A stretch of DNA of 64,000 bases, from contig OZ287703.1 of the NCBI GenBank assembly GCA_965649825.1, forward strand, positions 1 through 64,000. Direction: 5' to 3'. The first letter of the stretch is position 1; every line of letters starts with the position of its first letter. The notes under the pieces were generated by a model. That model saw only the letters and a program-made list of their open reading frames with translations. It was not told the DNA's origin and ran no database searches. The DNA comes from Penicillus capitatus (Eukaryota > Plantae > Chlorophyta). Positions 4,674 through 61,178 of this stretch are shown here, piece by piece. The position numbers were made by a program, and so were the translations under genes.

Positions 4674-4727
4674 GTTTGGCGGACCTCCGGCGCACGGCGA
4701 GCATCTTGTCTTTCGCCTGACGAAGCT

Positions 4728-24311: not shown

Positions 24312-25988
24312 CTACTCCAGATGGTTCAGACAAGGGAGCTTTCTTTTCAACTCTCGACGCGCACCATCCGTTAAGTTCTCGGCGCCGGTGCAGAGGGAGC
24401 GCAATCTTGGGAAGCTCCCTTCGACGAGGTAACCTCGCACACCCGTCAGCAGATCGAAGAAGTCCAAGTGCGTGATCATCAGAGTCAGCTCCCTCAACTT
24501 CGTCAGAAGCGTGATTCTGCAGAATCGCTGACGCGAATCGAAATCCATCGGCCCGTTCGAGCACACCGCGAGGGACGTCAGACTCTTCAGAGATCCCAGC
24601 GCCGGAAAGAAATCCTCTTCGATCTTCAGATCGGCCATTATCAGCGAGAAACTCTCCAATCGGGTCAGCGAAGCGAAGACAGACCCGGAGAGACCTCTAT
24701 CCAGGTAGCAGTTCAGAACCAGGTCCTCCAGCAGAGGCAGATGAGAGAGCGTTCGAGTCAGGTCGAGGTTAGGGTCTGCGCCGACGCACAGTCCCAGACG
24801 GACGAGTCCTGTGAGTTCGCTGACGGACGATGTCACTGGGGTGTGCACGGCAAGAAGCTGTGTCAGGTTGGACAAGAGCGCCAGCGAATCGAATCCCGGG
24901 TCGATCCGATTCCTGTTGCAGCCTCCGATCGTCAGCGACTTCAGCTGACTCAATCCGAAGAACGCCTCCGCGTCCGCAATCGTCGAGATTCTCAAGGGAC
25001 TGAGTGCGAGCTCCGTGACGGTGCCCATCTCTCTGAGCTTTGCCCAGAGTTGGGAACTCCATCGCGACATGTCGGACTTCGAGACGCAGAGCGTTTCCAG
25101 GCTCGTGAAGTGGTCGAGCACAGACCAGTCCGCTGTCGGCAGAATCCACATTTCATTGCGCCCGTTGGTGTCGTCGAACGACTTCAGCGTGGAAGCGTAA
25201 GGGAGCAGGATCTGGAAGATGCACACAGGCTTCCTTACATGAGGTCAGCGACGGACGGGAGTCACCTCGAGCAGTCTGCCTTCGCACTGCGGTCTCGTTC
25301 TTCTCGACAGCGCGCTTGTCAGCTCCAGTGTCGTTAGATTCGTCAGGGAAGGAAACACAAGCTGGCCTTGTCGGTCGATCAGGAGGCTGGGACCGACGCA
25401 CAGTTCCTCGATCTTGCGCATGTCGGCGAGCGGCTCCAGGTCGATGTCGACATTCTTCGGTTCCATCACCCACAGGCGTGTCAGATTCGTGAGGTGCTTC
25501 AGCGCCGATGCCGTCTGGGAATGCAATTGGTCGGAGTGCAGTCGCACCGAAAGCGACAGCAGTCGCTGCAGGGAAGGCAATGCGATTAACAGGCCAAAGT
25601 GCATACAGAGGGAGGACGATGCGCTTTCGGGCGGATGCTCTCCTTCGATGGACAGTTGTTCGATGTTCGGGAAACGGGTGAGGACGTCCAGGTAGTAGTA
25701 GAGGTCGCCCGGGTAGTAGTAGAGGTCGTCCGTGGATGCCTCGTTGTCCACCGACACGGAAACGGCGTTGGGAAACTTCGAGGCGGCGTCCGGCATCTTC
25801 TCCCAAGGAACGCGTGCGAGTCTGGGGTGCATCCGCAGACTCAGACTGCGCCATCTCCGACAGACGCGCGAACACTCGTGGAGCCCGTCGTCCACGAGAT
25901 ACCTTAAGACCTTAGACAGAAAGTACTCATCGTCCAGCAGTTCTCCGAGACGGCTCTCCTGCTGCGTACAGCGCGACACGTTGCTCAT
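24312..25988 (-). CDS. FBL3: F-box/LRR protein, two exons
   Basis: LLDDEYFLSKVLRYLVDDGLHECSRVCRRWRSL plus LRRs; short intron near 25210-25263; small internal duplication giving DDLYYYPGDLYYYLD. Confidence 0.85.
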
Positions 25989-27210: not shown

Positions 27211-28980
27211 TTATTCGTAAGCTGAGGTCCTCCTTCCAGACAGCGAGAACTCTCGAAGACACGGAAACATCTGCCACACCTCTCTGCGCGCACTGAGGTC
27301 AGTGTTTGCAAGAGGCAGATTCAGTTCTCTGAGCTTCGGCAAACGCATTTGCGGCAATCCAACTCTACTGTTGAAACGGCTCTCGATACACGAAATCTTC
27401 AGCACCTCCAGGTTTGACAGAAGACTCAGCCGCGGGCAAACGGTGTAGGGATCCACGACACTGAGACGATTGACTAGGCAGAGCTTTGTCAGTCCTGTCA
27501 TATCTGCCAGAGCGTCGACAAACAAATCGTCCACGCGGACATTCCTCGTCTCCAGATCCTTCAGTCCACTGAGTTGTCTGGAAAACTGGGAAGGCGTCGC
27601 GCAGTTGGGATGAAAAAGACGCAGCTCGTCGCTGCTCTTGATCGACAAGGAGGTGAGATTGGTCAGTGATGCGAGACATATCAAGTATTCGTTCGCGTTA
27701 AGCGAGGCTCCCACAAGACTCATAGTGTATCCGAGATGGAGGTCGACGATGCCCGTTGGAAGACGAAGAGAGTAGCTCCTCGATATCGGATCCAAATACA
27801 GCTCAGTGAGTTGCGTCAGGATTGTGAGACGTTCCGTGATCTCGGGTAAAATCGCTCGATGCTTGTCTCTGAGTGTGAGCGATCGGATCCCGGCGAACGA
27901 GGACATGCATTCCGCAAATGCTCGCAGTCCTCCGTGGCCCAGTTTGTAAAAATCCACCTTCGTCAGATGACGCACTTCCATAAGGCCTTCGAAAAAAATG
28001 TCTTCTCCTCGGAAAAAATGGTGAACCGAGAGGCTTGACAGACACGCGAACATTCTCCAAAACGACCGCCCACGCGTCGACAGAGGTTCGAACCACCACC
28101 ACGAACAAACGTCCAGCTCCTGTAGGGTCACGGCATACGGCAAGATGCACTACAACAAAAAACTTAAGGAGAGATCCAATGCGATTCCGAATTCTCACAC
28201 CTGCAAGTCGATTGTAAACGGTGTGTGTATTCCGAGAGAACCGCCAGCGATGTAGAGGGACGTAAGCCTTGTCAGCGAAGGGAAAAGGAGCTCGCCGCGT
28301 TTGTTGACGATCAACTGAACAGCAATCTTCAGCTCTCTGAGCCCGCGGATCTCCGTAACGGGCTCCAGATCTGTCTGCTCAGAACAGTAAACGGCGAGAC
28401 ACAGCGACTCCAGGTTCGTCAGACGACGCAATGCCTGGACGACGTCGCCCAAGACGTCTTTCTCCATCCATAAGGAGAGAGACTGGAGACGATCCATCAT
28501 CGGGAGGCATGTTACCAGGCTGCCCGCTTTCTCTAGCTTGGTGTAGGACAGATGCAGATGCTGCAGATTCTTTAGGCGCGACAGCTGCGGAATGACTTGC
28601 CCTTCGACAGTGTTCTCGCCGCCAGAGACCCTCTCCAACTTTAGCGACACGGCCTTCGGGAACAAGGAGACTACTCTCTGCAGCTGGTCCGGATGAATAC
28701 CGCGGAGTTCTACCGGCAGCTTCCCGCAGGCGTCTCTCCAACGACGGCACACACGGCGGCATTCATGGAGTCCATCCTCCATGACGCATGTTAGCGTTTT
28801 GAGCAGCAAATCCTCGTGCTCGTCCAGGAGAACGCCAAGGGTCCTCTCCGAGTCGGCTGCTGTCACAGACGGACTCGCGACGCTGTGCTGTGCACCGTCT
28901 GAGCTGGCGGACGCGTCAGACTTCGATAAGCGTCTGCTCTCCGTGCGTTGATAAATCTCTTTCGAATGTACGCACCCCAT
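27211..28980 (-). CDS. FBL4: F-box/LRR protein starting MGCVHSK
   Basis: F-box LLDEHEDLLLKTLTCVMEDGLHECRRVCRRW; ORFs 28195-29124 and 27211-28143 joined by a short intron. Confidence 0.85.
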
Positions 28981-30414
28981 CGGAACATGGGCGAAGTTTC
29001 TTCCAGAAACGCGGTGTAAAGCCGTGACAGACTTGCGTCGATTGAACTTCGCGCTTATTCGTTGAATCGTTGTTAGGTGTACGAAGTTCACGCGAATTTC
29101 GTTGCGCATTACGATCGTCGCCACTGTACTGCGTCATCACTCATGCCTTCGATTCTCTCAGGCATTGAATACTCAATCGGAACACAACCTTAACACCCCG
29201 AACAGCAGCAGCTCTGCGAAATGACATCGTTTTCTTTGTCCTTAGTTAGACGCGTATACTCTTCTTTGAGCGTTTAGAACAAATATAGTCCCTTACTAAG
29301 CCGTGCACTGACTGAGACGAACAAATGGGAAATGCGCACCAGTATTGCACAACTGACAACGAAATCAGATCCCAAACGTCACACGCGCAAAGTGGCAGAT
29401 GTCTTAATCGGAAGAGAAACGACGGAGAGACGGAAATCTGGAGAACAGGTAGTTCTTCTGGCTATCGTCCAACTTGCAGCGGGGCAATTCCAGCACCTGG
29501 AGCCTGCTCAGTTGAACTCCAGACAGATTCTCAAGCACGCGACTTTGGTATGGATCAAGGACGTACAGGCGCAGAAACAACAGGTTCTGGAGGCAGTTGG
29601 CCTCGGCATGAAAACGGACCGAATGAGCAGCATCTGTGTTCTCCTGAACCCACAATCGAAGCGCCGTCAAGTGTTCTAAAGAGGCCAGAACTTCGAAAAA
29701 AATCAGATCGACATCCACTCCGTCAGGCTGAGTGATCGCAAACCTTCCATGCGAACGAACATGCAACTTGGGATGTAAAACGCACAGAGGTAGTTATGAA
29801 TTTCCAGAGATTCCAGACGCGGCATGATCTCTGCCATTTGTAGCAGTTGCTTTGGTGTCATCGGATAAAAAATGTGAACAGTGAGATGCGTCATCGTCTC
29901 CGATAATGGCAATCGGTACGCAGGTATGCGAAAATCAAAAGAAAGCCTCCTTAAGTGCACGAACCTATTAGTGGCGGCCTCGATCCAGCGCCACACGAAG
30001 TTGGCTCGCCAGTGAAACAGTCGGAACTCAAACGACGTGAGTCGTGTCAACGAGCAGTGGAAAATCGGTGACGGTGTATCAATCAAGAACGACATTCTGA
30101 CGATGGACAGATCGGCCAGCAAAGGCATGGCGCCAAGTGCAGAGCAAAAACAAGTATCTCCGATGCTCACGTCCTTCAGATGAAGCGTCCTCAGATGGGA
30201 GAATGCTGCTAAACTCTTCCCATCTTTAAGCTCCAGATTTCGAGTGATCACTCCTGTTACAGTCAAGTGATGCAATGTCGATGCGTACGGACGCATGATC
30301 TACACAAAAACTAGAAATGGCTCCAGTATTCGGACGATAAGGTGATACCTGCAACAGAGGAACGTCGAAGTGAACAAGTTCGTAGTTTAGCGGGATAGAG
30401 TAACGGGTGCATAG

Positions 30415-30663
30415 TGTCGTGATGATGAAGAGCTGAAGGATGATGGTCCAATAAATGCCTCATCATCGTAAGAGGCACTGATGGCCAAACAGCTCATAAT
30501 GGCCACGTCACATCAGAACCTACCCAGAACCTACCCAGAACCTACCCGGCACCTATTCAGCACCTATGAAACCCAACACTATAAAAAGGGGATTATTGTT
30601 ACATTGATTATCTTTGTAAGAAACTTTGTTGCGTCTACCACCGTCACGTACTTGCCCATGTCA
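30415..30663 (+). repeat. Gypsy-2 5' LTR (contains an 11-bp CAGAACCTACC tandem repeat)
   Basis: Direct repeat of 34661-34909. Confidence 0.93.
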
Positions 30664-33600
30664 ATTGGTTTCGGAGCGGCGACTTTCGAAGATGGACTGT
30701 GAGGAGTTCACGTCCCTTCTCAACTCGGCAGCCTTCGTCGAGGACGATTACCGCCCTCGCATCAAGTACGTGGTTCAGAGGGTGGAGCCCAGATCGCCTG
30801 CCTTCGATCTGATACAGCGGGTCCTCGACCGAGTCGGACCGCGCTTTCGAACGCAGGCAGCATTCAATGAGGCCTTTTGCCGGACCCGCGGCCATAGTTT
30901 GCACTATTTTTGCCGACGAGGTTCTGCGCCTCAAAACTGAGGACATGACCACTGTCCTCAGGAACGCTAGCTTCTGGGAGTCGAGCATGTTGACGCGAAC
31001 GGACGCAGATCATGATCCTATTGACCCCGATGTGGCGACGACGCCATTGGTCAACGTTGCCGCCGACGGAAGAGTGATTGGCGACGACGGCTCGATCAAC
31101 TTTTCAGCGATCTCTAACGCTGGAAGAATCATGATCGGAGCCAGGGACATCTGCAGAACCTCCAGACGAGAGGCGCTCAACATGCTGAAGTTCTTACAAA
31201 AGATCAACAATTCGAGCAATGCATCGACAAGGCCACGAAGAGCAGCAGGCCAGTCGAGGAATGGAATGGGCGTCGTGCCTTCGCCGCAGAGAAGTCTCTG
31301 CCGAAAGGAAACGAAGCACACGTCTGCGAGACCATCAGCGAGACAGAAGAAGACCCAACGGAACAGGATGTGCAGTTCGCACACACCGTTAGAGCGGTCA
31401 CCAAGACCAGGAGAGTTTAAAACTTGGTCTCATCTCCCCGAGCCATTTGGGGTATCCACGCCATATTAACGCTTTAGTTGATTTTGGCGCCGAGTCCTCC
31501 ATTGTATCCCCGGCACGAGCGAAAGAACTGGGAGTGAAGGTCAGGCCAGACGAGACCCGTCTGCTGTTGGCCCATGGAGATACCGCGAAGGTCACCGGAC
31601 GATGCGACTTCCAGGCAGCCCTGGCGCAATCCTCCGACCAACAATTCTCCATGAGTTGCCTCGTACTACCGAGGTACGGCTACCATCTACTACTGTGCAT
31701 GCGCGCGATGATCGACAGTAAGATCTCCGCGCATCCCCACGACAGATCTATCAGCATCAGAGGCGACAGGTCAAATGCCACTTCACAGGACCGAAAGCCG
31801 ACAAAAGGGCGGCCAATGAGATCGCGCATGAGAAGATATGCCGCTGCACCGAAAAAGTCGATCATCTACCGAGAATCACCGAAGAACGGCTGCAGGTGCC
31901 GTTGAACCGGTCAATCGTGCTCGGACCACGAGAGAGCAGGATGCTCAGACGCCGAACGTGCTCCCCGGCGCACTCGTGTACAAGAGGGTTCCGACCGTGG
32001 CACCGCGATACTCGGTACACCTCGGTGTGCAGTACCACACGTTCTCAACGCTCGCCAACCATGCCGCGGAACCAGTGAAGATAACTGGAAGAACGACGAT
32101 CTTGGACGTGCCCACAAGACAAGACGTCGAGTATACCGCGTGCGATTGCAACGGAAACCCACATCCGTTGAGAAGCAACAGACCACCTTTTCCCCAACGG
32201 CAGTACGCTTGCAGTCAGGTATACTGTCGCAGAAGCCTAAAATTGGCTGCTGCAGTCTCGAACAGCTGCTGGCCCGATTCCCAGACGTACTTTGTGAAAA
32301 ATTGGACGTTCTTCGGGATGGGAGGTCGGCATCCGCGACGTACAAGGGCAACTACATTCGGTCTTTACCAAAGTTCCCTACACGTTCGCTGCTGAACCGA
32401 CGGCATGCAGAAACGAGATCGACGCACTCATCGAAGCCGGAGTCGTCAGCCGATTTCACGGAAAACCGAAGCACATCATCCCTTGGTTTTCTGTTCCGAA
32501 GAAGAACTCGCTCGAGCGGCGAGTAGTGCTAGACTTTCGCGGACTCAACACGCTGACCACAAGGAGTCCCGCGCTGCCCATGCATCGAGAAGGCGCAGTT
32601 CAGAACCTGTCCGGGATGCGCCACTACGCGCAGTTTGATTTCCGACACGGATTCTAGCAGATACCTCTGGCACATGGCCTCCAGCCGTATTTCGTCACCG
32701 TGTCCGACCGAAAGCCCTACGCCTTCACACGGCTTCCGATGGGTTGGATCAACTCAATGGCTTTCTTCGACCAAGATGTTCAAGAAACCATAGCGGAAGC
32801 ACGAGACCAGTTGAAGCAGCAGAAGACTCGAACGGCAATCGAGAGCTATGCCGACGACGTCTGCGTAGGAGCACGGACACAAGAAGATCTCGAGAGAGCA
32901 GTTCTCCAACTGCTGACGGTCTATGACAAATACCGGTGGACGGCATCTCCGAAGAAGTGCCAGGACGGTGTTAACGAGGTCGAGCTCCTCGGACACCGCT
33001 TCACGCCCGAAGGCGTTTTGCCCCCCAAAGCACGCTGCAGCAGTTGCCCCCTGCAGCGCCGCATCAACGAAGACCGCAATCCGATCGTTTTCAGGACTCC
33101 TTCGCACCTTGCTGGACTATTGCAAGTGCGACCTCCGCCGCAGCTTAGCGGCCCCGCTGCAGCAGTCGCTCAATGCAGCGCAGCCTCAAACGAAGACCCC
33201 AGTCCGTTCGTTTTCGGGACTCTTTCGCACGTTGCTGAACTCTTGCAAGTGCGACCGCCGCAGCTTAGCGGCCCTGTCGAAACTCACGAACGCCAATACC
33301 AAAGTCATCCAACGATACTGGGCGGAGGATCCCAACCGCTGGGCCACCCTCCTCCGCTCTCTCAACCGCATCTGGATGGCTTTGGGTACGCGTTGTTCGA
33401 CAGTGACTCTAAACGTCTCCTCCGCCTTCGAGCTGGCGGATTCCAACGTGAACCGTTCCGATCCAGTGGCAACGCTGAGCTACTCGGAATGAAAGAGGCG
33501 CTGAAGAAACAGGCACCTGCTCATGGGCAAACATCTCACCATCTTCACTGACGCCACCGTTGTCAAACAAGCGAGTCGAAGCAGCGAGCAGAGCTTCCTC

Positions 33601-34660
33601 GTGCAGTGTCATCTAGACACCCTCAACCTCTCTGCAGGAAAGGACCAACGACGACCGAAGCTCCCGCGCTTGCGGCCACCGCACACCACAACTGCTGGCC
33701 AGTGTGGTACCTGCAGATGGAAAACTATCTGAAGACAGGTCGATGTCCCGATGACGCCAACCCCCAGTGCCAACACTTTGCCCGCCACGATTCGCCCGTC
33801 GCGCAGTCATTGAATACGTGGCAACCTATGAGGCAGTGCGTAGGCATGGACGTCATCGACCCCATGAAGCCTGACGGCTCCTCAAACTATATCATCGCCG
33901 CAGTGAACCTCTGCGCACGATTTTGTCTTCTCTCGGCATCCTCGCAAGCCAAAGCGACATCCACCATCAGACTGCTCGAGCGCTGGACAGCCCTTTTCGG
34001 CAACCCCGAGTGTCTGCAGACAGACAACGATTCAGCGCTCGTAGGCAATCAGTTATCCAATTGGATGTCGGCCCGAGGAATTCAACGCCGCACCATCCCG
34101 TGATCGCACCATCCTGTGATCGCACCATCCTGTGATCCCAATGCATAGGGACCTCCGAGCGTCTCAGCCGAGACGTCATCCGCCGTCCACACTGCCTTCA
34201 AAACTCAAGGCAAATGGACATCAGCTCTTCCCCAGATTCAGGCACTGCTAAACGCGCTTCCGAACTCGGTGACCAAACTCAGCGCCGCACAGACCGCTTT
34301 CGGTTCTCAACCTCGCACGCACTTCATTCCCGCGCCACTCACTTTCACCGCGCCCTTCTTGCACCTCGTTGGACCGCCATCGATCACCAGATGCAGCACC
34401 AGCAACCACACCAACAACTGTCCCACTCTCACCGTTGCTCCGACATCCTAGTCGGCTCCCTCGTGCTGCTTTTTGACAATCAACACGCGCAGACGCACGG
34501 CAACCAGCTTCCTCCGCAGTGGCTCGGACCGTAGACGATTCACGATACATTTTCTTCCTAACGTTACCGTTTCGTTTCTTCTTCTTCCAAGAAACCCTTT
34601 CTCGCACATCGCGATCATCTACGACGTTTTTTCAATCGGAGTTCAGCGCAGGGAAGCGAT

Positions 34661-34909
34661 TGTCGTGATGATGAAGAGCTGAAGGATGATGGTCCAATAA
34701 ATGCCTCATCATCGTAAGAGGCACTGATGGCCAAACAGCTCATAATGGCCACGTCACATCAGAACCTACCCAGAACCTACCCAGAACCTACCCGGCACCT
34801 ATTCAGCACCTATGAAACCCAACACTATAAAAAGGGGATTATTGTTACATTGATTATCTTTGTAAGAAACTTTGTTGCGTCTACCACCGTCACGTACTTG
34901 CCCATGTCA
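34661..34909 (+). repeat. Gypsy-2 3' LTR
   Basis: Direct repeat of 30415-30663, preceded by the purine tract GCAGGGAAGCG. Confidence 0.93.
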
Positions 34910-37813
34910 ATAGGACGTCGAGTCTTGTCAGCTGTGTTGAAGCTGCGAAGATCAACTGTCCGTTCTCCTTTGCAAGGAAAGGAAGAGTGGCAGTCAAGGA
35001 TTTTAGATTCCGAATCTCGGTGATGAGATTCGTATCCTGAACGTCTCCTGGTTCTCCTGTAATTCTCAACTCAGTCAGCCCCGTCAAGAACTTCAAGAAG
35101 ACCAGAAAATCGGAACAAGTAAAACGATTGGTCAGTCTAACGGACAATGACACTAATACTGCCAGGATTCTGAGCCTGGTTCAAGTTGGTTGAGGAGAAG
35201 AGGCCACTGTACAGATCTCCCGATGCCGAGATGTCTGAGGTTCCTCAACGAAGACATACAAGACCCAAGCAACGTTTCCACGAAGCCGCCGTCTTCGTCC
35301 GCTATCTTCTCCACCTCGAGCGAAACCGTGGAGTTTGGAAATGTGTCTGTGAACGCAGGTATGTTGTCATCCAAGGAGAGCTTGAGTTTCACGGGGAGCT
35401 GGTTACAAACTTCGCACCACATGCGACAGACGCGACGGCATTCGTGGAGTCCGCTGTCGACAAGGTGAACGAGAATCTTCGACAGGAAGTATCTCTGCGA
35501 CAGGAGGTCTGCTATTCCCTCGTCAGCGGACATCTCCGTGACGGACACGGTCAGCGGAACAAGAAACGAGATGACCCTTAGAGACGGCGAGAACTGAAAA
35601 GACCAATGCTGCACTACGGCAACCCGTCTGTCTGTGCGTTAGATTCGACTGCCGCGTTGTCGATGACATGACTTCGTTGCATCCGAAGGAGGATTTCTCA
35701 GTCGTGTCTCCTTTTCTGCGAGTCGAGTGACGAACACAAGCGAAATGCATGTGCTGCGCAAACAAACCCAAAGCTTGTGTCTGATTCAAGTGACAACGGT
35801 GTATCCAGAGCTTCAGACATGCGTCGTTCACGGGATGATCATGGAAACTGGACGGAGATGGTGTCTTCAGCCATCGTCTTGATAAGAGCTTCAGCATACC
35901 GGCCAGACGTGAGTGGACAATGAAATGACAGCGGCCGGCTCGAGAGAGAACTGAGTCTCGGAGTGGCGAAGGGCGAGAACTGAAGCTGGACTCCCGGAGC
36001 GCGACTGCTGATAGAACTCGGCCGTTGAAGACTTTTCGCGGTCCGCGATTGGCCGAGGGATGATTCTGAAACCTCCTCTCTGAGATTAAACCGAGTTCGT
36101 CTTGTCTCTCTACCAACACAATTCGACATTTTGCCGCTTGTCGAACCCATCTTATTCGAGAAGAGGGAACGAATTGTCGAGTCTGCTTCACGCTGGTCGA
36201 CCGGTGGCAAACGTGTCACGCTTGCTACGCGTGGCCGCGGTTGCAGTACATGAACCTCCTACCAGCGCACGATCGGTTTGACCGAATCGTCTGGCGACGA
36301 CGCGTATTGGCTGCTCCACGCGGCCACTTGAGGACCTCGACGTTGGCTGTCTGGACATCCAGTATCAGTCTAGACTAGTTGAGTGGCGCGACCGGCATTG
36401 TGTAAAAACTGGAACTTGATGAAGCGTTCGACCTTTTCCCTGGTTCTGGCTCTGAAGGAACGGCAAAGACGTTGCCGAATCGGAAAGAGATCACAGCAGG
36501 GTGGCGGCTGGTACGAGTATCGTGTTGGATGCGTCTGCAATGTATGGATCGACGCGGCGACGCTTGACAATTGCAGTGCTGCGAACAAAAGATGATAGAT
36601 ACCCTTTAACCCAAAACAATGGACTTGAAAAATAAAGCCACGAAGAACTGAAACAATGATAATTAAGCAAGCATGCCCCTATGTCTGTCCCATGGACCAA
36701 TCTGTCATCAAGATTATGCGTGTCTCGAAGAAGAAGTGTATCGATGGTTACGATACGCGTCGTTTGGTGTTTCGGAACGGGAGGTTTCGGCAGTTCGATG
36801 CGAGAACGAATGACGAGGATAAGGAGCAAAGGTAGACAGAGTTGCGTAGCGAGCTCCGTGACGTGACATTCGCCTACTGTGACGTGACGTCGACGCGGAT
36901 ATCAGTTTGTTTCTCCCGTTTACTGACCACCTGGCACATCTTCTCACTCTTTATAAAAGGGAGGTATCACACGGCGATGAATGCAGTGTTATGATCGTGC
37001 TCTTCGCAACTGCAAGCTAGTTTTGCGTTTGGTTCCTTCCTGGGAAGCCCTTTCCTAGTTATCACCCTGCTGTCTTAAGGACAGAACTTGCCGAGCCTGA
37101 TTGCCTTTGCCAAGTTGCACTCCTCCAGGCCTTCGTCATCTCATCTATTCTTTTATTTGTGGAGTTTTGAGCGGATGCGAGTTTCTGCTCATCGCATCAA
37201 TGCCGAGAATTTTAACGATGGCAGGCATTTGGCGCTGTGTTGTTTTGAAATGGCCCAGAATCTGGTGCATGGAAAACAGAGCAGTCAGTTTTGTGAGCAG
37301 AAACACTCTTCCCTTTGCAACATCGTTTAGTCTGTGTAAGGGACTCTTTATATCTCTTGTCTGATCTGCGCTCGACGGACAGAGGACATCGGAAGCTCTC
37401 ATCACCGTAATGCGTTGCCTCGCTTACTGAGTGAGAAATTGACTGACCTCCAGTGTCTTGTGTTCTTCAGGAAGTCAAGAATGCTTATCAGATGAACCGG
37501 GTTGACTTCAGAACTTGAATCGTGCGAACATGGACCTCTTATCATCATTGCAGTCTATCAGGGAGAGAACCCTAACACAGCACAGCACAGCAGAGGATGC
37601 AGATGACAGGTGGCTGGCAGGCGAAGACGCATCGTGTGGCACAGACATGTCTTACGATGCAGTTACGTAATGGCCTTTTGCAGTCGGTGGGTCCATCTTG
37701 GTACGATGCGCATGCATAAAAGGCCAGTCGCACCGTCCATTCGTCCATTTCACGTTTCGACTGCAGCCAGCACTGCACTCTTCTACCGTCTGTCAGCGCG
37801 CCGCACTCGGAAG

Positions 37814-40716
37814 ATGAAAAAACTCGATCTTCTCTTCGTTTCGTTGTGTCTGTTGATCTACGGACCGCATCTGTCGGTCGGTAGTCACGGTCGGCTAAAC
37901 ATGGATTTCTTCGCAGCTGACTCTTTGTCGTGCTTTGCCAGAGAGTGGTCGTCCAGAGGCCATGTCCACCGCGTTCGTCGAGCGCGAAATCACGGTGAGC
38001 TTCGCTCGTCATGCCGAATGCGGCGACGCGCTGTGACTGCCTCGTGCCCTAGAAGACGGAAGACTCGCTGCATGGTGGACGCTCCACTGTGCCCAGTGCG
38101 GCAGAACTGTCTCGTTCCGCCGAGAACGGCGGATTCGCTGCCTCGCGCGACTCTGCAAAAACGAATACTGCGGTACGGCTGTTGTACCACGAACGCTGTT
38201 GTGACACTTGTGTCCCATGACAGTGTCTTACTGATGACAAGGAAAACGTCGAGAATCCCTCAGTCAACCAATTGACACCACTTCACGAGGCAGCGCGCGA
38301 CGGACGAACTGAGGAGGTCAAGGTCAGCACTAGACGGACACGTTCTGCTGTTACCCAACCAGTATTGTCTGCGTACGCAGGATCTCGTGTCGGCCGTGGC
38401 GAATGTCGACGCCGTAAGCGACGAGCACGAATACACACCGCTTCACTATGCAGCCGAACGCGGACATCCGGAGATCGTTCAGGTGAGTATTGAACGCGTT
38501 TTTGCGCCCATTAGACAGCTCGCCTTTAGGTTCTTCTGGCAGCCGGGGCGAATATCCACGCTGTAGATGTGGATGGAAATACACCGGTTAACATTGCCGC
38601 CAAAGAGGGACACAGAGATGTCGTCCAAGTTAGTATTTGACGCGTTTTCTGCGTCTGTTAGATCCGTCGCGTTCAGGATCTCCTGGATGCCGGGGCGAGT
38701 GTGTCGTTCCCACGCCGTGCTCTGAGAACACCGCTTCACTGTGCAGCGTACGGTAACCATCCAGAGATTATCCAGGTGAGCACCGAACACCTTTTCTGCA
38801 ACTGTTAGATCCATCGCGTTCAGGATCTCCTGGATGCCGGGGCGCACATCGACTCCAAAGAGAGGGGGACTGGAAACACACCGCTTCATTATGCCGCCAA
38901 AGAGGGACACACAGAGGCCGTCCAGGTGGGCACCGAACGCCATTACGCGTTCACTAGCTCCATCGCATCTAGGCTCTAGTGTCGGCCGGCGCGGCTGTCA
39001 ATATTGCTAACAGGGAAGAAGACACACCGCTTCTCATTGCCGCCGAAGAGGGAAACGCAGAGGTCGTTCAGGTGAGCATCGGAAGCGTTCTCTGCGTCCA
39101 CTAGACGGCTCGCTTCTAGACTCTTCTGACAGCCGGGGCGAAAATCGACGCAATAAGCAGATGGGGAGATACACCGCTTCACATTGCAGCCCATTTCGGG
39201 CGTCTGGATGTTGTCCAGGCGAGCACCGGTTGCCATCACCCGTTCACTAGCTCCATCGTGTTCAGGCTCTCGTGTTGGCCGGGGCGACTGTCGACGCCTT
39301 AGGCTACGACGGAGATACACCGCTTCACATTGCAGCCCATTTCGGGCGTCTGGATGTTGTCCAGGCGAGCACCGGTTGCCATCACCCGTTCACTAGCTCC
39401 ATCGTGTTCAGGCTCTCGTGTTGGCCGGGGCGACTGTCGACGCCTTAGGCGACGACGGAGAAACACCGCTTCACTATGCCGCCGAAGAGAGACACAGAGA
39501 TGTCGTCCAGGTTAGCATTGGTCGCGTTTTTGTGTCTGCTGGATACAACGCCTCTAGGCTCTCGTGTCGGCCGGGGCGAACGTCAACGCCTTAAGCGAAT
39601 GGAACGGTACACCGCTTCACCGTGCAGCGTTTGGTGGCGATCCACAGATTGTCCAGGTAAGCATTGGACGCGTTTTTGCGTCTGTTAGATCCATCGCGTT
39701 CAGGATCTCTTGGATGCCGGGGCGTATTTTAACGCCACCGACGCAGGGAATGGAACACCGCTTCACATTGCAGCGTTTGGCGGCCACACAGAGGCCATCC
39801 AGGTGAGCACGAAACGCTATTGGTGTCCACCAGCTCCATTGCGTCTAGGTTCTCTTGTCGGCCGGTGCGGATGTCAACGCCGCGGACAGGATGGGGGATA
39901 TACCGCTTCACCGGGCCGCCGACGGTGGAGACACAGAGGCCGTCCAGGTTAGCATTGGACGCGTTTTTGCGTCTCTTGGATACATCGCGTCTAGGTTCTC
40001 TTGTCTGCCGGTGCGTATGTCAACGCCGTAGGCTATGAAGAATACACACCGCTTCACTATGCCGCCAACAGGGGACATGCAGAGGTTGTCCAAGTAAGCA
40101 CCGAACGCCATAGTGCATTCATTAGCTCCATCGTGTCTAGGCTCTTCTGACGGCCGGGGCGACTGTCGACGCTCTAAGCGAGGACAGATGGACACCGCTT
40201 CACCGAGCAGCCTGTTTCGGAAATCAGGAGACCGTTCAGGCGAGCACTGGACGCGTTTTCTGCGTTCACTAGATGATCCATTGTATCTAGGCTCTTCTGG
40301 GAGCCGGGGCGAACATCAACGCTGTAAGCGACGGGGGATGGACACCGCTTCACCGAGCAGCCGATTTCGAAAATCCGGAGACCGCTGCGGTGAGCATTGG
40401 ACGCGTTTTCTGCGTTCATTAGACCGATCGCGTCTAGGCTCTTCTAGCAGCCGGGGCGAATGTCGACACTGTAAACGACGATGGATATACACCGCTTCAT
40501 ATAGCATCGTCTATCGGAAACCTGAAAATCGCGACAGTGAGTCGTCAAAGTTCATTTACCGCCTAAATCTCTTTCTAGGATCTCGTCAACACTGGGGCAT
40601 CAAAGTCGATTGCTGACAAAAATGGAGATTTGCCTGTCGACCTCGTCTGCGTGTCTACGTACAACGAGTGTTCTGAATGTACTCGATCCTTCCTCACGGA
40701 ACTGCTGCAGCGCTGA
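37814..40716 (+). CDS. ANK4: predicted secreted ankyrin cassette protein (15 cassettes)
   Basis: Exon 1 at 37814-37889 ([25 protein letters not shown]), 52-nt intron 37890-37941, linker and N-cap exons, 15 cassette exons 38381-40536, C-cap exon 40579-40716 ending [10 protein letters not shown]. Confidence 0.88.
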
Positions 40717-41860: not shown

Positions 41861-42031
41861 CAAGGCGGCGATATCACTCAGGTGTCGAGTCACGTCAAGT
41901 GCGAACTTCCAAGAGGGGCCGCGTAGAGCAGGAGTTTGAATTCGCAGCTACGGATTGAATCCACAGCGATTTTTCAACAGTCCGTCGCGTTTCCGTTTCG
42001 GATTCGTCTGTTAAACCCTATCGAATCACCG

Positions 42032-43882
42032 ATGGGGTGGTTACATTCAAAACGGATTTCCCAACGCGCAGACAGCAGACGCCTACCGCAGTCTGAAGAG
42101 TCCGCCAGCTCGGAAGATGCGCAGAACAGCGTCGAAAGTCCAACCATGACAGGAACGGACACGACAAGGACACTCGGGGTTCTCCTGGATGAGTACGAGG
42201 ATGTGCTGCTCAAGACTCTAGAATGCGTTATGGAAGACGGCCTTCACGAGTGCCGCCTCGTTTGTCGCCGCTGGCGGGACGCTTGTCGTCGACTGCCCGT
42301 CACCATTCAACCAGGTATCGCTTTCGACGCATCCAAAGTGGTGAAGGCGGCGGCGGAGCGATTCCCAAACGCAACAGCTCTGCGTCTCGGAGAATGGCGA
42401 CGCCGAAAAGATCCATTGGATGAGGATTCGATGCGTTCGCTGCAACGACTTGAGAATCTGCGCACATTGCAGATGCGCTTCATGGGAGAGCGTCCGGCGG
42501 CGGAGACGCTGCTTTCCACTCTGTTGTCGATGCGGCTTCTCCGATCCCTTTCGTTCAGTTTCAAACGCAAAAGCGACTCCTCTGCATGCATCGCCATCCT
42601 GCAATACCTGACGCAGCTCACTTCGCTGCATCTCCGAGCACCTACTATCATACGAACGCATCTGGAGCCGATTACTGAGCTCCAGGGACTGCTGAACTTG
42701 ACCGGCGATTTTCATCTGTTGGTCACTTTTGGCGATCGCCTCATCTTCCCTTCACTGACCCGACTCACGGCGCTCACAGTCTACTGGATCTGCACGCGTC
42801 AGAATAGAGAAAAAAGAACACAGTTGCGAGTGATGATCCACTCTGATGCCAGTTCTTGTGGGATCTCGTGTGTTGTGTAGACGTTCTTGCCTTACGCTGC
42901 TCAATTGAAAACATTGGACTTCCGAAAGCAAGCGTGCGATCCTCCGTTTCAAGACTGGCCCTTGCTGAGAGCGTTTTCGAGACTGAAGACGCTTAAACTA
43001 CGGCATTTAAATTTGGAAGTTGACGATTTCTACACAACCCTCTCGGACATGACTAGACTGACCAAACTGGAAATCGCCTTTCGAAACGCCGCCGCCCGGC
43101 CCATTATGGTTTCCGTGCTCTCCCTCACCCAGCTCAACTCACTTCTCCTCGATCGTGTTTGGGGTGAGGACGTCACATCAGAAATGATAGAAGCCATCAC
43201 AGGCATGGTGCAGTTGACGCGTTTCGCGTTGACACCGTCCATGGTCGGAGATTCCTTGAGCTGCCTGACGAAGCTGGTCGATCTCAAGATCGTTGGCTAC
43301 GGTAACTTTACGACGGACCTGTCGGACACTCTTTCCTCCTTGCGTCATCTGACGTCCCTTCACGTCTACAAGTCGGGCCAGAAGTGCATGCTGGCGTCCT
43401 CCGCACTGCAGCAACTGACAGAACTCAGGGTTTTGAATCTGTGGGAGATAGACACGGAATCAGATCTTCTCCAAGTACTGACAACGTTGCCGTGCTTAAC
43501 GGAACTGAGCGTCATCTCTTCTTATAACTGCGATCCTGGAGATTGTTTCTTTGCCCAGCTCTTACCGTTCTCCAATCTGACGGTGCTGGGAGTTTCGCGC
43601 CGTTGGGGGATGTCAAAGACACGGATTGAATCGCTCGGGAGATGTATGCCGAGGATCCAGAAGATCCAATTCCTCTCACACGATGGCGCGTACAAGAAAA
43701 ATTACAAAGAAGAAGTGGCGTTAATGGAGAACTCCATGAACTGGTCGGATCTGGCAGATGCGTTTCCATGCCTTCGCCGTATCCGTCTCGTTTTCGTCCG
43801 CAACTGTCTGCGTCCATATCGTGAGTATTTAATGTTCTCAGAAATCGACCTCTTCTGCAAAGAACTGCAAAACGATGATTGA
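42032..43882 (+). CDS. FBL6: F-box/LRR protein starting MGWLHSK
   Basis: F-box LLDEYEDVLLKTLECVMEDGLHECRLVCRRW; ORFs 41936-42880 and 42887-43882 joined by a short intron. Confidence 0.85.
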
Positions 43883-44719: not shown

Positions 44720-45045
44720 TCAAGGAGTCAACAGCTCAAGGAGGAAGGATCGAGTAGCATCGGAACAATTGGCATCCGGATAACTACAAACCACGTCGAC
44801 AGGGAATTCTCCTTCGTCGTTGACAAACGACTTTGATGCCCCAGCGTCGACGAGATTCTGAAAAGAGATCTAGGCTGTAGATAGAAGCTATTGACTCACT
44901 GATGCGACTAGTGAACGTCCGCGAGACAATGCTACGTGAAGCGGTGTACTTCCGTCAGTGGCAGCAGCTTCGACATTCTCCCCGGCCACCAAGAGAGCCT
45001 GCAACACCGCAAAAAGTCCAGCCAGATGCGGTACCGGACGATGCG
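44720..45045 (-). pseudogene. ANK5: truncated ankyrin gene remnant (last cassette plus C-cap)
   Basis: 99-nt cassette 44900-44998 (ALLVAGENVEAAATDGSTPLHVALSRGRSLVAS) and C-cap ...FLLELLTP*. The upstream part is replaced by retroelement debris, and a homologue of the ANK 5' flank survives at ~46830-47160. Confidence 0.75.
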
Positions 45046-48710: not shown

Positions 48711-50324
48711 TCAGGTCGAGGCAGCCCGAGGGACTACGTCCAACCAGATACCCCCGATGGCTTCTGTGCTGAGACCTGACCTCGTCTTGCTGGTCAACTC
48801 GCCGAGCGGTTTCTTGAGTCCGAATCGGTAGCGCGTCATCAGGCGGATGATCGCCATGCGCATCTCGAGCATGGCTAACTTCTGTCCGGCGCAGTCCCTT
48901 GGGCCATAGGAGAAAGGAAAGTAGCGTTTCTTCGACGTGTCTTCCCCGCTCAGCCATCTTTCCGGCCTGAAAGCCTGGTGGTCCTCCCAGTCCTCGTCAG
49001 CTCCAATCCAACGGTTGCCTGGAATTCGTAGACGTGTGCCCTTAGGGACGCGGTAGCCCATGATCACCGTGTCTTCGACGACCACACGATTTATGTGCAG
49101 CAGAACGACATGGGCGATCCGCATCCCTTCCTTGATGACGGCGTTCAGATAGGACAGCTTTCCGAGAACCTCAAAGTCTACATCCACGGAAGGCGAATCG
49201 CACAATCCGTTTTCTCGCAGCTCCTCCAACAGTTTGTCAGTAACGCGATCGTGCGCTGCCAGATAGGCGAGTATCCATGCCAGCTGATGCCCAGTTGTGT
49301 GCATGCCTGCCATGATTATCGTCCCGATCTCGCTGATCATCTCCTTGTCGGTCAGCAGCGCACCCGTGTCGGGATCGATCGTGTTCCGCAGCGTGTACCA
49401 CATCGGTTCGTCTCCGTCGACGGGGTCTTCCTTCTCCCTCACGGCCTCCACCAGCTTCTTCCACTCATCGGACAGGCGGTTGATCGTCGCACGCCGATGC
49501 TTTGCGCCTTCGGAGTGCGGAAAGAGCTTGTAGTACATTCGCTTCAACGGATCCGCAACAGCATTCGACATAACGTGACCGACGTCTATCATTGCTTCCT
49601 GGAGGTGTCTGCTGCCGTCCAGTCCGCCGAGATTGATGTCCAAGGCGACCGCTCCGATGGCGTCGAGCGTCAGCTTGACACACAGCTCTTGGAGATCGAC
49701 AGCACCGTCCCTGCGCCTCTTCTCGATGACGTCGATCATGCCTTCCAAGGCAGTGTCTATCTTGGGAATCGCCGTCTTGAGACGGCTTGTCTGCATGGCG
49801 GACGCGTAGACGGCTCGAATGGCTTTGGTATAGGGCGTGATGTGCTGAAACATCAGCATGGACTTGGCTGTGGGGTCGTTGCCGATCATCTGAACACCAC
49901 GACAGGGAATGGACTGCATACTGCACGAGAAACTTACCGGAAGGAAGAAACGGTCAGTGGGTGACCTCACCAGAGCTTTCGTCCTCGACAACACGAACCC
50001 TTTGATGCACTCGACGTCGCGAATGTGAAGCTGTGTGCTGCCTAGGAGGTCGACCTAAAGATAGGCATGCCGTTCTCGGTTATAAGAGTGCGAAGACGCG
50101 TTCCATACGCGCATGATTTGTGGATTGCCGACTTCTGCCAGCCAGCGTGCATAGAGAGAGTTTTGATCGATGCCTTGGCGGTGAACGTCTATGACTTCAA
50201 ACACCTTTCCAAAATACGGCCAAGCAGAAGGCGAGGGGATCTTGTGCAGATCGTATCGCCATCTTCTCCACAGTGTGCGGCTGAGTAGCAGCGCGAGAAG
50301 ACTAAGCAGCAGTTCGACGAACAT
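48711..50324 (-). CDS. Cytochrome P450 (three exons)
   Basis: Hydrophobic N-terminal anchor, I-helix AGMHTT, ExxR (EGMR), FRPERW and heme motif FSYGPRDCAG; introns at ~50108-50055 and a ~48-nt intron near 49936-49889. Confidence 0.92.
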
Positions 50325-50476
50325 AGTGACACTACGTTACAGGAGAGAGACGCTTAACGCCAAACGCGGGTCAATGCGGGTCGCTTTCACGATGTGACCC
50401 GGGACCTATCGCGCGACACAGCCCCTGAATTTTTCGAGTCATTGCAGGTAACTCGCTCATCCACGGCAGTGACGTC

Positions 50477-50800
50477 GTGGTGAATAGACATCTCGTGCCT
50501 CATCTACGGCGATTCGAGAAAGTGAACCACCACTGTCTGCTACTTTCCGTGATGCCTCTAGATTTCGCCAGCCTTGTGCCGTGCGTTCAGTCTATGAGAC
50601 ACCTTCGGTCATTCTCCCTCGGAATTGGATGCAAGGAGACGGTGCACGAAGCAATGTGTGGTGTGAAATGTCTAAAGAAGCTGGTGTGCCGGAAGTCCGT
50701 CTGATCTGTGTGTGACCTCTATATCGAAACGGAGCCTGCCACCGAGCTACGAGATCTCAGAGAACTGTACGTGCCTCAAAGCTGTTTTCTGAGCGTCAAG
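50477..50800 (+). pseudogene. Degenerate LRR fragment
   Basis: MRHLRSFSLGI and ETEPATELRDLRELYV resemble the family's QTDLEPVTELRGL region; broken frames and no F-box. Confidence 0.35.
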
Positions 50801-51239
50801 GCGCACGCTGCGTTGTTCGGAGCATTTCCACGCCTTCATCGTCTTCTTTAGCACAACCAACAGAAGACCTGTGAACGTGCAGCACCTTTGCTCACGCAGA
50901 GGGACAAGCAAACCTCCCATCTTTTGACCGAAATCGCGTCGGACATTTCGCCTCCGATCGCGAGATTTCGACCCGGTCGTCGCTTCTCTATGAAGCGTTC
51001 GACATCCATCGCACAAGAGCGTGACACGACTAAACAGTTTAGACATAGAATCCTTTCGCCTACTTGCCGTTGTTCTTTGGACATGGTCATTTTCCATTCC
51101 TGTGACGGTTTCCTTGCCCGGAGAGGGATGAATGGATGTTCAAGTGGTCGGCGACGGTGTCCTGGTGTGTGGTGCGTCGCCAGTGGAGAAACGCCCGAAC
51201 TGCGTCTCAGTCTCGACGGCAATGTGTTCCACAGGCCTC

Positions 51240-54200
51240 GGGTGTTCTCGGTAAGAGAGTCGACAGGAAACAGAGCGACGATATCGGATATCGAGTCACA
51301 TCCGGTGCGAAATTCCGATTCGGACCGCGTAAAGCAGAAGGAATACATTTCGCTGTTACGGATCGAATCGACAGCGATTTTTCCGACAGTCCGTCACGTT
51401 TCCGTTTCGAATTCGTCGGCAAACCCTATCGACTCAAAGATGAGGTTCGCACACTCAGTCGAAAACGCAGAATGCTTACAGCGACATGTTCAGTGGCATT
51501 TCAGATGCTCCTGTGGATACAGGCGACAGCTTAGTGAGCGGCGCGGACTCGGCCACGGCGCGTGAGAAGACGCTGGGGGCTCTTCTCGAACAGGATCATA
51601 TCCTGTTCAAGGTGCTCGTTTGCGTCATGGAAGACGGCCTTCATGAGTGCCGTCGTGTCTGCCGTCGCTGGCGCGATGTTTGTGGGAAGTTGCCAGTCAA
51701 GCTGGGAGGTTCGCACCCAGACAAGCTGGATAAACTGGTGGACTTGTTCCCGAACGCCACATCGTTGAGTTTAGGAAGTCCAGATGACAATAACAACATC
51801 GTGGGAAGACAGGCGATTCAACACTTGTCGCGCTTGAAGCATCTGCAGAATCTGGATTTGTCCATCGAATCCACGACGGCAGATGTGATCAGCCTCGTGA
51901 CATTGCTGCCATCGACCGATGTTTTACGCTCGTTCGAGGTATTCGTCGACCAAAAAGACAAGTTCAACGACGTCGTGCATGTGTTGCGTATCGTGACGAA
52001 TCTGGAGACATTGATTCTCTATGCTTCTGGTTTCGTCCAGACGGACCTGGAGCCTGTGACTGAGCTTCGAGGCCTCGGATGCTTGATTACAGAATTTTCA
52101 CTGATCGTTAACAGCAGTGGAGAACTGTTATTCCCCTCGTTGACAAAGCTGACGCGCCTCGAGCTTTTTAACAACATCCATGAACACGAACTGAACACTT
52201 CCGACATCCTGAAGGTATGCAAACTCCGAAAACGCGTCTCGTATTTCAAAACGTCAGTTGTTCTAGTCTATCCTTCCCTATGCGCAAACACTGCAGTCGC
52301 TTATGGTCGATTTTCCCGCTGACTGTCAGGGATTGTGGTCCGATGAAGAGCATCTGTTGAAGGCGTTTCTGATGTTACGCAGTCTGTCCATCAAATCCTA
52401 CGACCAACCGGACAACAGCTTTCTCGACGCATTGAAGGAAATGCATCATCTGACAGAACTGGAGTTGCCCATCCAAGACGAGGGATTTCTTGAGGCTTTA
52501 GCCGCGTCCGCGTCCCCACTCACTGGACTCGGATCCCTCACTCTTTCTGGAAGTGGTATGTGGTTCATTCCACCAGTCGATGAACGACACCTTAAATCCC
52601 TGAAGCATCTCACGGAGTTCAGTATGGTGCATTATCCAGTCGGCCGAAGCTTTCCGACTGGACTTCGATCGCTTGATTTGATATTTCGTGATTGCCCCCC
52701 GGTAGACTTCGCTGAAGTATTGGTAACCATGACAAATCTGACGTCGCTGGATATCCAGATTCCTCACTATCGCCAAGAGCTGAATCTTTTTCACAGTGAC
52801 GGTGTGACACCAGCTCAGTTTTCTGGAAAACTCGCGAAACTGAAGCGTCTGTCGATACGGCATGTGGCCGTCGACGACTCATTTCTCGACGCTGTGGGTA
52901 TGCTGACTCAGCTGACGTCGCTTTTTTTCGAAAACTACATAACATCTGTCGACCCATACGTACTATATCCCCAGTTGAGTAATCTCACTGAACTGATCGA
53001 GCTGAATATTTTCTGTCTTGCATTGCCACCTACCCGCAATAACGAATTCCCGCAGTTGTGCTTGCCAAAGCTCAGGAAACTAGATTTCTCTCTCAGTAGC
53101 ATTGATGCCAATGTGTGCAGAGCGATGTGGAAGACCCTTCCCTGCCTTCGCAAAATGTCACTTCTCGGGAAGACCTTGGAACTTTGAACGAGGTGCTAGC
53201 TTTACAGTTGTCGCACCTTAACGAGCGATGTGTTCTAGAGAGTAAGTGAGATCGTCTTACCAGTTTTCCTGCCGAACGCGACACAGACAAGAGCAATCGA
53301 CAAACCGAATGACAGCATCGAAGATCATTAGGCACATCTGAGTTGCCCCATAAGATCTTCTGGACGATACACCTGTTTGGAATGTAGACCTTCTCCAGTT
53401 ATTGCGTATACAATCATTCAATGCTGTTATCGTATGATTCGTATTCAGCTATCGGCCTTAGTGCAAATTAGAACGACAGTTGTTTTGTGTAACGATGTCT
53501 TGACAGATTCTCAACGATCCAGTCACGTCACCGCTGCGATGCGCGAGAGTTTGACTCACTCCATCGGCCATCGACGAATCAAACATGTAGGAGGAGCACT
53601 GCAATCCTGACGACAAGGTTACTGTAAAGGCAGACCCAGTAAGCCGCACGCAATTCGTTGGCGATACAAGATTGCGGAGATGTGGACGCGTGCATGTGTC
53701 GCGCACTCCACTGCTTGACGCGACGTTCATATCCAATACTTCGATCGTCGTCTTGGATAACGAAGAAGCACTTTGCGTTCTGCGCGTTGTCGTTCAGAGG
53801 TGGCCAGTCGTCGAAGCTTGCAGCAACAGACTGCTTCAACCTTGCGTGCCGAGCACTCCAATGTCAGCGATTCCAATTCGACAGTAGACGATACCGAGCG
53901 ACATGGATTTACTTCTCTGAAAACTGACGATCGCGAAGCGCGTCGTGTATGTTCAAGTTTCTCGAGATTCGCTCTTGAGTGACGACATCACGTTTTGAGA
54001 GTCAAGGAAATGGAACGTCGGTGAAGCTGAATGTTCCTTCACTTGTGCTGTATACCTTTGGTAACAGATTGCTTTGGGGGTTGCGATCAAACATCTTCAC
54101 ATAGCAACACTCCGTCGAGACGACAGCAAATGTTGCTTTGTGATTTGCGCTCTGTTTGAAATCATGAAATTCGCTCTATAAAGCGGAAGTATAGCGTAGC

Positions 54201-61004: not shown

Positions 61005-61178
61005 TGTGGAAATGAATGACTACAACTGACACAATCAAATGAATCATGTGTCATTATAAAAGGAGGAAGTCAAACAGTCTTTTAGAGATTAGTTCTCCCG
61101 ACTCTTCGTCTTGTTTTCCCGCGCCATCGACTGTCAACTTACATGGTTTCGGAGCGCACGGACAACGAATCCTTGGAG

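Follow-up and report, generated by a model that had tools for sequence, protein, structure and literature searches.

The first 64,000 nucleotides (nt) of contig OZ287703.1 of Penicillus capitatus (Chlorophyta; GenBank assembly GCA_965649825.1), from here on called the window, are eukaryotic nuclear DNA of about 52% G + C and carry six ankyrin genes, ANK1 to ANK6. In these genes each internal repeat is encoded by a short exon, a cassette, which together with its intron typically forms a unit of 146 nt. The complete genes have intact open reading frames (ORFs), cassettes have recently been duplicated and recombined within the arrays, and the identity between paralogues is mosaic. An earlier note, made from the letters of this DNA alone, had taken the genes for a locus dedicated to generating diverse secreted binding proteins.

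Ankyrin genes built from one-repeat exons

Tandem Repeats Finder (TRF) reported arrays with a period of 146 at positions 142-1262, 39165-40499 and 55671-56996 of the window. The codons for the ankyrin motif TPLH (ACACCGCTTCA) occur 65 times in the window where 21 occurrences are expected, a number that none of 100 shuffled sequences reached. An nhmmer profile built from the 15 units of ANK4 gave 52 matches in six blocks of the window, with E-values down to 1e-38. From these matches and from parsing of the units we counted 10 complete cassettes and one cut by the window start in ANK1, 5 in ANK2, 4 in ANK3, 15 in ANK4, 1 in ANK5 and 12 in ANK6, which are exactly the counts that the earlier note had given for all six paralogues. 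The interval 38381-40536, to which it had drawn attention, coincides to the base with the cassette array of ANK4, starting with cassette 1 and ending with cassette 15.

The 47 complete cassette exons comprise 42 of 99 nt, 4 of 102 nt and 1, in ANK6, of 105 nt; these lengths had been named before and hold across the paralogues, though not within ANK4, which has no 105-nt exon. All are in phase 0, of a constant length in multiples of 3, and encode one repeat each; none contains a stop codon (0 in 47). The plan put forward in the note, one repeat period per symmetric phase-0 exon between fixed caps, with 4 to 15 modules among the paralogues, was thus recovered. In the AlphaFold model of ANK3 the exon:exon boundaries (residues 126/127 and 159/160) lie inside the helices 122-130 and 155-163. 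On this model each cassette exon is one ankyrin period of 33 residues running from the middle of helix 2 to the middle of the next helix 2, and not, as had been thought, from the start of helix 2.

The internal introns (n = 41) are 46-53 nt long, 24 of the 41 having the modal length of 47 nt, and are presumably spliced as modelled. Read-through is blocked in 40 of the 41, either by a length that is not a multiple of 3 or by an in-frame stop. Size and phase of the introns agree with the earlier description, which had presented them as a property of the cassettes; the size, however, is shared by the P450 gene of the window, with introns of 54 and 48 nt, and is therefore ordinary for the genome. 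The separators of the cassettes would be minimal spliceosomal introns of genome-normal size. What is specific to the ankyrin family is the exon-per-repeat plan, since the genes for F-box and leucine-rich repeat (LRR) proteins in the window are mostly long ORFs.

The donor is GT in 40 of the 47 cassettes and GC in 7 (15%; at 187, 333, 39219, 39365, 40240, 56655 and 56801), two of the GC donors being common to the pair ANK1/ANK6; the acceptor is AG in all. GC-AG introns usually make up about 1% of the introns in eukaryotes, so that the rate in the cassettes is far higher.

The 5' models were built from an alignment of the regions upstream of ANK2, ANK3, ANK4 and ANK6, in which a TATA-like block, the ATG with a signal-peptide-like sequence, and a 120-nt exon 2 are all conserved. 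The block also precedes ANK2, ANK3 and ANK6 and gene A of contig L052, one of the comparison contigs, which come from the ENA assembly ERZ25074695 with prokaryote-style gene calls and without eukaryotic annotation. The donor GTTCGT at 37973, after codon 53, was chosen because no other donor leads into exon 2 in phase 0 while placing the TAA of ANK2 and ANK3 inside intron 1. It replaced that of a first model, in which a GTGAGC donor at 37995 was used; this was rejected because it leaves phase 1 and needs read-through of the TAA in ANK2 and ANK3.

Every exon of the four complete models is a multiple of 3 (159 nt, 120 nt, 99 nt, the cassettes, and 138 or 153 nt), and the four genes splice to intact ORFs of 668 (ANK4), 574 (ANK6), 338 (ANK2) and 303 (ANK3) amino acids (aa). 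Exon 2 and the N-terminal 126 aa of ANK4 have no match in Pfam. Upstream of the ANK5 remnant neither an N-cap nor 5' exons were found. The parts of the genes are listed in Table 1.

Table 1. Parts and members of the ankyrin family, by position in the window (last row: by position on contig L052)
Feature	Position	Strand	Remarks
Upstream block of ANK4 with TATA-like box GCATGCATAAAAGG	37700-37760	+	about 55-115 nt before the ATG; near-invariant columns in the four-gene alignment
ANK4 exon 1, signal-peptide-like start	37814-37972	+	159 nt, 53 aa; probable donor GTTCGT
ANK4 exon 2	38053-38172	+	120 nt, 40 aa; differences between ANK4 and ANK2 mostly at synonymous third positions of its frame
ANK4 N-cap exon	38224-38322	+	99 nt, 33 aa
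ANK4 cassettes 1-15	38381-40536	+	13 of 99 nt, 2 of 102 nt; 14 introns of 46-51 nt; donors 11 GT, 3 GC (39219, 39365, 40240)
In-register 146-bp tandem duplication in ANK4	39165-39474	+	recent; copies 98% identical (TRF); source of the chimeric cassette 7
ANK4 C-cap exon	40579-40716	+	45 aa and TGA stop; two family-invariant Cys
ANK1, cut by window start	1-1698	+	partial cassette 1-39, 10 complete cassettes 88-1502, C-cap 1546-1698
ANK2, complete	11974-13417	-	338 aa; exon 1, exon 2, N-cap, 5 cassettes, C-cap
ANK3, complete	20577-21862	-	303 aa; exon 1, exon 2, N-cap, 4 cassettes, C-cap; Pfam, AlphaFold
ANK5, remnant	44720-44998	-	last cassette 44998-44900, C-cap 44857-44720
ANK6, complete	55138-57614	-	574 aa; 12 cassettes (one of 105 nt); collinear with ANK1
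Three family members on L052	5061-5905; 10001-11600; 17421-17531	-; +; -	third is a lone last cassette

Changes in the arrays and selection on the cassettes

Cassette 7 of ANK4 (39266-39364) is a chimera, whose 5' part is like cassette 8 and whose 3' part, including the intron, is like cassette 6. Unit 7 is identical to unit 8 from position 1 to about 62 and to unit 6 from about 46 to 146, which places the crossover in the TPLH codons. In ANK1 the exons of cassettes 5 and 6 are 99% identical, and their full 146-nt units agree at 136 of 146 positions. The collinear genes ANK1 and ANK6 have exon identities of 87-96%, and each has cassettes that the other lacks. Together these three cases bear out the claim that the number of modules has changed recently at the level of the DNA.

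The introns are homologous in all paralogues (gtgagcaYYgaacgcc...ccactag...tctag), from which it follows that the ancestral duplicated unit already consisted of exon plus intron. The mean pairwise distance between introns is 0.30, as compared with a synonymous diversity of 0.45 in the framework codons. A special explanation for this conservation was considered and found unneeded: donor, branch and acceptor signals fill about one third of a 47-nt intron, and ordinary splicing constraint would be enough.

Sliding identity between paralogues revealed that the ends of the genes and their arrays have different histories. Over about 600 bp (approximately 13616-13016), comprising the promoter, exons 1 and 2 and the sequence up to the N-cap, ANK2 and ANK3 do not differ (100% identity), whereas their arrays are 55-74% identical. 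In ANK4 and ANK6 about 1.4 kb of 5' sequence (approximately 36999-38299) is shared at 96-100% identity and the 3' flank at 92-96%, against 60-75% in the arrays. On contig L003, which is about 90% identical to and syntenic with the neighbourhood of ANK3, the gene at the position of ANK3 has a 5' end of the ANK4/6 type, as would fit an overwriting of 5' ends by ectopic conversion. Gene conversion seems to have made the gene ends uniform.

The match of this ankyrin homologue (10520-10980 of L003) breaks off in intron 2 and is followed by unrelated sequence to the end of the contig, probably because a transposon has inserted there or because the assembly broke at a repeat.

Within the cassettes the entropy is highest at residues 14, 15, 17, 25 and 26 and is also high at residue 12. 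The first five coincide with the positions randomised in designed ankyrin binders (DARPin); since they vary in ankyrin repeats generally, they alone are no evidence of diversifying selection. At L2, P19, L20 and A23 nonsynonymous diversity is near zero. Over all cassette pairs the framework codons have a nonsynonymous diversity (pN) of 0.28 and a synonymous diversity (pS) of 0.45, which points to purifying selection, and the six "binding" codons have a pN of 0.64 and a pS of 0.64.

In the eight collinear cassette pairs of ANK1 and ANK6, pN is 0.100 and pS 0.060, giving an omega of 1.7 (1.3 for the binding set, 1.7 for the framework), and the eight paired introns have diverged by 0.101. Fisher's test gave p = 0.09 for nonsynonymous versus synonymous sites and p = 1.0 versus introns. 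Statistically, this pair cannot be told from neutrality. Nor do these values represent uniform purifying selection, which the earlier note, together with invariance of the arrays, had regarded as speaking against its own proposal. The recent evolution of the arrays is compatible with neutrality or weak diversification, being neither uniform purifying selection nor demonstrated positive selection; the long-term integrity of the reading frame in all cassettes speaks against simple decay.

Proteins, relatives and origin of the family

Spliced ANK3 matches the Pfam family Ank_2 with 235.6 bits (cut-off 27.3; E = 5.6e-71) and Ank with 142.1 bits (cut-off 21.1), with four matched stretches each. Its AlphaFold model, computed from the single sequence, is a continuous ankyrin stack across the modelled exon junctions, with predicted local distance difference test scores (pLDDT) of about 85-97 and paired helices every 33 residues from 112 to 250; the confidence is low for residues 1-110 (pLDDT below 60) and likewise for the C-cap. 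No NB-ARC, ROC-COR or other signalling domain was detected with Pfam: the only families matched in ANK3 are ankyrin ones, and the first 126 aa of ANK4 match none.

By inspection the N-termini contain positive residues, an 11-aa hydrophobic core and S-V-G at -3/-1 before a putative cleavage site, features kept in four divergent members. The Kyte-Doolittle mean of the core over 11 aa is 2.6-3.1 among the four N-termini (2.8 in ANK4). The Cys residues of the C-cap are invariant across the family. In plasmodiophorids secreted ankyrin proteins form the largest cluster of the secretome (PMC12503489). With the signal-peptide-like exon 1, the invariant cap Cys and this precedent, the proteins are probably secreted, and they would enter the secretory pathway. 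That they are secreted, as the earlier note had it, is plausible; we count it as interpretation, and it depends on the choice of the GTTCGT donor and on inspection of exon 1.

Plasmodiophora brassicae and Spongospora subterranea have ankyrin effectors of the signal-peptide type, with a conserved hydrophobic framework and a polymorphic surface (PMC12503489), to which the products of the window genes would be analogous. The likeness is one of proteins, and no specific sequence relationship is evident, the generic ankyrin matches of ANK4 having at most 44% identity. The earlier note knew of no secreted ankyrin version in an alga; for protists at large the novelty does not hold, the plasmodiophorid families having been described (PMC12503489).

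It is also conceivable, although unlikely, that the proteins are not secreted but are ordinary cytosolic adaptors, the hydrophobic stretch being a membrane anchor or an organelle-targeting sequence or the 5' model being wrong. Ankyrin repeats are usually cytosolic, the donor of exon 1 does not conform to the consensus, and the N-terminal part and the C-cap are those modelled with low confidence; conservation of the ATG, the hydrophobic core, S-V-G and the TATA-like block in four divergent members nevertheless argues for secretion, as do the invariant Cys of the C-cap and the secreted ankyrin families of other protists.

Few relatives were found. A search with the read-through N-terminal ORF recovered the genes' own copies and one relative on ctg340142, and a HMMER profile of exons 1 and 2 gave two solid matches and one marginal match among 1.84 billion representative proteins. 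One of these matches led to contig ctg340239_14x (L052), which carries a remnant and another two genes, apparently intact, that have 5 and 6 cassettes. The L052 genes have the TATA block, signal-peptide-like exon, exon 2, N-cap, 99-nt cassettes, short introns and Cys-containing C-cap all as in the window, yet are too diverged for a blastn alignment with the window copies. This nucleotide divergence together with the common exon plan indicates that the architecture is old and stable within the family.

We consider it fairly probable that the genes are a germline nuclear multigene family in which the number of repeats evolves by unequal recombination of a symmetric unit of exon plus intron, the ends being kept alike by conversion. 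The members would share a layout of signal-peptide-like exon, 40-aa exon 2, N-cap, 4 to 15 cassettes and Cys-containing C-cap. The family would have arisen by tandem duplication of the 146-bp exon-plus-intron unit and would still be changing in length in the same way. Whole repeats could be added or removed, and hybrid ones created, by unequal crossing-over in register or by replication slippage, wherever in the unit it takes place; the reading frame survives such an exchange because every exon is symmetric (phase 0-0) and homology extends over the whole unit. Ectopic gene conversion could make the 5' and 3' ends of paralogues near-identical while the arrays diverge. The proteins may act as variable protein-binding scaffolds, be it effector-like or in the recognition of surfaces or prey.

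Several points weigh against this account of a variable, functional family. Because of the 7 GC donors among 47 and one donor gtgctc, some cassettes may splice poorly. The donor GTTCGT of exon 1 is non-consensus and was assigned solely from phase and from the in-frame TAA of ANK2 and ANK3, and the suggested function is taken from analogy. For ANK1/ANK6 omega is about 1-1.7 and nonsynonymous sites have diverged as much as the introns, which fits relaxed constraint as well as diversification. Spliced ANK4, searched against 5.8 billion proteins, retrieved generic ankyrin proteins alone, with at most 44% identity; none was a spliced homologue or specific to the family. No relatives came from two scans of JGI metagenome and metatranscriptome contigs: 600 pattern matches obtained with the N-terminal alignment gave 0 confirmed, and 47 loci with two TPLH motifs one 146-nt period apart, from the DNA-pattern scan, included none that is cassette-like. 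The sole weak JGI match (L051, 33% GC) is an intron-less ankyrin ORF.

A more ambitious version of the multigene-family account, which at present we think rather unlikely, is that the genes form a small set of secreted ankyrin binders made to turn over fast in the germline. Caps and leader would be kept uniform by conversion, the 146-bp modules recombined in register, and the binding face placed under diversifying selection, as a counterpart of the LRR and tetratricopeptide repeat (TPR) candidate receptors of Ectocarpus or of the effector repertoires of pathogens. Exon skipping, harmless to the frame, could buffer the loss of splice sites.

The precedent that the earlier note cited from the brown alga exists: the ROCO-LRR and NB-ARC-TPR genes of Ectocarpus have one repeat per equal-length phase-0 exon (Zambounis et al., 2012, PMC3341825; also PMC11378527). 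The window genes are like them in this and in tandem gene duplication, variable repeat number and variation proposed to lie in the ligand-binding solenoid (PMC3341825). They differ in that their exons encode ankyrin repeats and are 99 nt long rather than 72 nt for LRR, or encoding TPR; in that their introns are minimal (about 47 nt) and without the inactivated or inverted repeat exons that mark shuffling in Ectocarpus, nhmmer having detected no cassette on the opposite strand in or beside any array; and in that, by Pfam, they lack ROC-COR and NB-ARC while having a signal-peptide-like N-terminus.

A variable number of internal solenoid modules between constant caps is also found in the variable lymphocyte receptors (VLRs) of lampreys, likewise binders. 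In the germline a VLR gene is incomplete and is completed somatically from flanking donor LRR cassettes. Four genes of the window, in contrast, are complete, and nhmmer found no donor cassettes, the sole orphan being the ANK5 remnant with its own C-cap.

In vertebrates, Gallagher and colleagues are said to have reported in J Biol Chem in 1997, the membrane-binding repeats of ANK1, ANK2 and ANK3 lie largely in exons of 99 or 198 bp, and thus would resemble the window genes in having a 33-residue repeat per 99-nt symmetric exon. The vertebrate ankyrins, conserved cytosolic adaptors, have a fixed number of 24 repeats and long introns, unlike the 4 to 15 repeats, the alignable exon-plus-intron units and the secretory-looking N-terminus of the genes described here. 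In a literature search we found no citable description of 99-bp ankyrin exons or of tandem exon duplication in ankyrin genes.

A dedicated diversity-generating system, in which cassettes are shuffled, skipped or alternatively spliced into an immune-like binder repertoire as in Ectocarpus ROCO-LRR genes or lamprey VLRs, is what the earlier note had favoured; we think it improbable. Equal-length, symmetric phase-0 exons can be skipped without a frameshift, but with introns as tiny as these splicing is expected to proceed by intron definition, where exon skipping is uncommon. The five most variable residues are those randomised in DARPins, but the same positions vary in ankyrin repeats at large. 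The point estimate of 1.7 for omega of ANK1/ANK6 is not significantly above 1, pN being equal to the intron divergence. Module numbers from 4 to 15 and constant ends with variable middles are as such a system would have them; against it stand genes that are complete in the germline, the absence of silent, inverted or inactivated cassettes in or beside the arrays (nhmmer), the absence of NB-ARC, ROC-COR or other signalling domains (Pfam), and a family that looks small, with 2 solid relatives of the N-terminal module in the 1.84 billion representative proteins. As a dedicated locus the proposal was therefore not supported, complete germline genes being found without silent or inverted donor cassettes and without significant positive selection. 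Nothing was seen that speaks for a programmed or splicing-based diversification.

No better do we rate the chances of decay or neutral evolution, in which the arrays are relics drifting to pseudogenes and their variation is without function. The pN of 0.100 of ANK1/ANK6, close to the intron divergence of 0.101 and above the pS of 0.060, would be expected of such relics, yet 47 of 47 cassettes and about 11 in L052 are free of stops and frameshifts, though many pairs are just 55-75% identical, and the framework is strongly conserved (L2, P19, L20, A23; pN 0.28 versus pS 0.45). Decay would also agree with ANK5 and one L052 copy being remnants, with the L003 homologue cut by an insertion in intron 2, with the 15% GC donors and the one aberrant donor, and with the activity of transposable elements in the cluster, one of which has identical long terminal repeats (LTRs); splice sites, caps and promoter block, however, are kept in the divergent members.

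An assembly artefact by mis-assembly or collapse of tandem units is barely credible: although 15813 and 50333 of the window each mark the end of an ENA contig and L003 stops shortly past the 5' part of an ankyrin gene, the separately named ctg327160_11x is 100% identical over 13,668 bp that include the whole 12-cassette array of ANK6, the arrays are at most 2.2 kb long with units mostly 60-85% identical and hence easy to place, and frame and splice sites are kept in every cassette, unlike in random mis-joins.

Already known are exon-per-repeat symmetric architectures and secreted ankyrin families of protists (PMC3341825, PMC11378527, PMC12503489). New is the combination of ankyrin cassettes, minimal introns, 146-bp units that are still homologous, 4 to 15 modules in recent paralogues, and a secretory-looking leader. 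The multigene family is an unusually clean natural case of the growth of a repeat protein, in which the descendants of the 146-bp unit are alignable and a chimeric repeat has its crossover in the most conserved codons (TPLH). It opens no new class of mechanism. If the proteins are secreted and fast-evolving, they would extend the secreted-ankyrin effector theme of the plasmodiophorids to another eukaryote and would be an ankyrin parallel to the brown-algal exon-per-repeat LRR/TPR genes.

Neighbouring genes and mobile elements

The window is 100% identical to contig ctg339784_20x_l from 15813 on, where that contig ends, and to ctg327160_11x_l over 50333-64000, with a contig end at 50333; it thus spans ends of contigs of ERZ25074695. 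Rfam and tRNA scans of the window gave no match. The window offers no sign of photosynthesis, and the earlier note's word "alga" is interpretation.

At least eight ORFs for F-box and/or LRR proteins lie among the ankyrin genes (3640-4497, 9767-10576, 16778-18626, 24312-25226, 27211-29124, 41936-43882, 51486-53187 and 59766-60560). An ankyrin gene and its neighbouring F-box/LRR gene are co-duplicated at 86-91% identity, and L003, L004 and L052 show such pairs as well. Apparently both families grew together, as one unit.

At 4653-9158 gag, protease, reverse transcriptase (RT), RNaseH and integrase are encoded in one ORF of 1501 aa, that of a Ty3/gypsy element which looks intact. A second gag-protease ORF of 558 aa (61143-62819) belongs to an element at 61143-64000, with RT and integrase next, as seen whole on L001 and L004. 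A further LTR element at 30415-34914 has LTRs of 254 nt (30415-30668 and 34661-34914) that are 100% identical, and an ORF with an RT fragment at 32700-33551. The paralogous segment upstream of ANK6 is without this element: the matches of L001 to the window at 36012-34910 and 30414-29877 abut. Identical LTRs and an empty paralogous site indicate a very recent insertion.

The cytochrome P450 gene lies at about 48711-50324 on the minus strand and has an N-terminal membrane-anchor exon besides its two short introns (54 and 48 nt). Dozens of paralogues with 40-86% identity occur on megabase-scale contigs of the ERZ25074695 sample. All close relatives are metagenome proteins of ENA or JGI, and the best named matches are fungal or plant P450s, with 30-36% identity over half the length.

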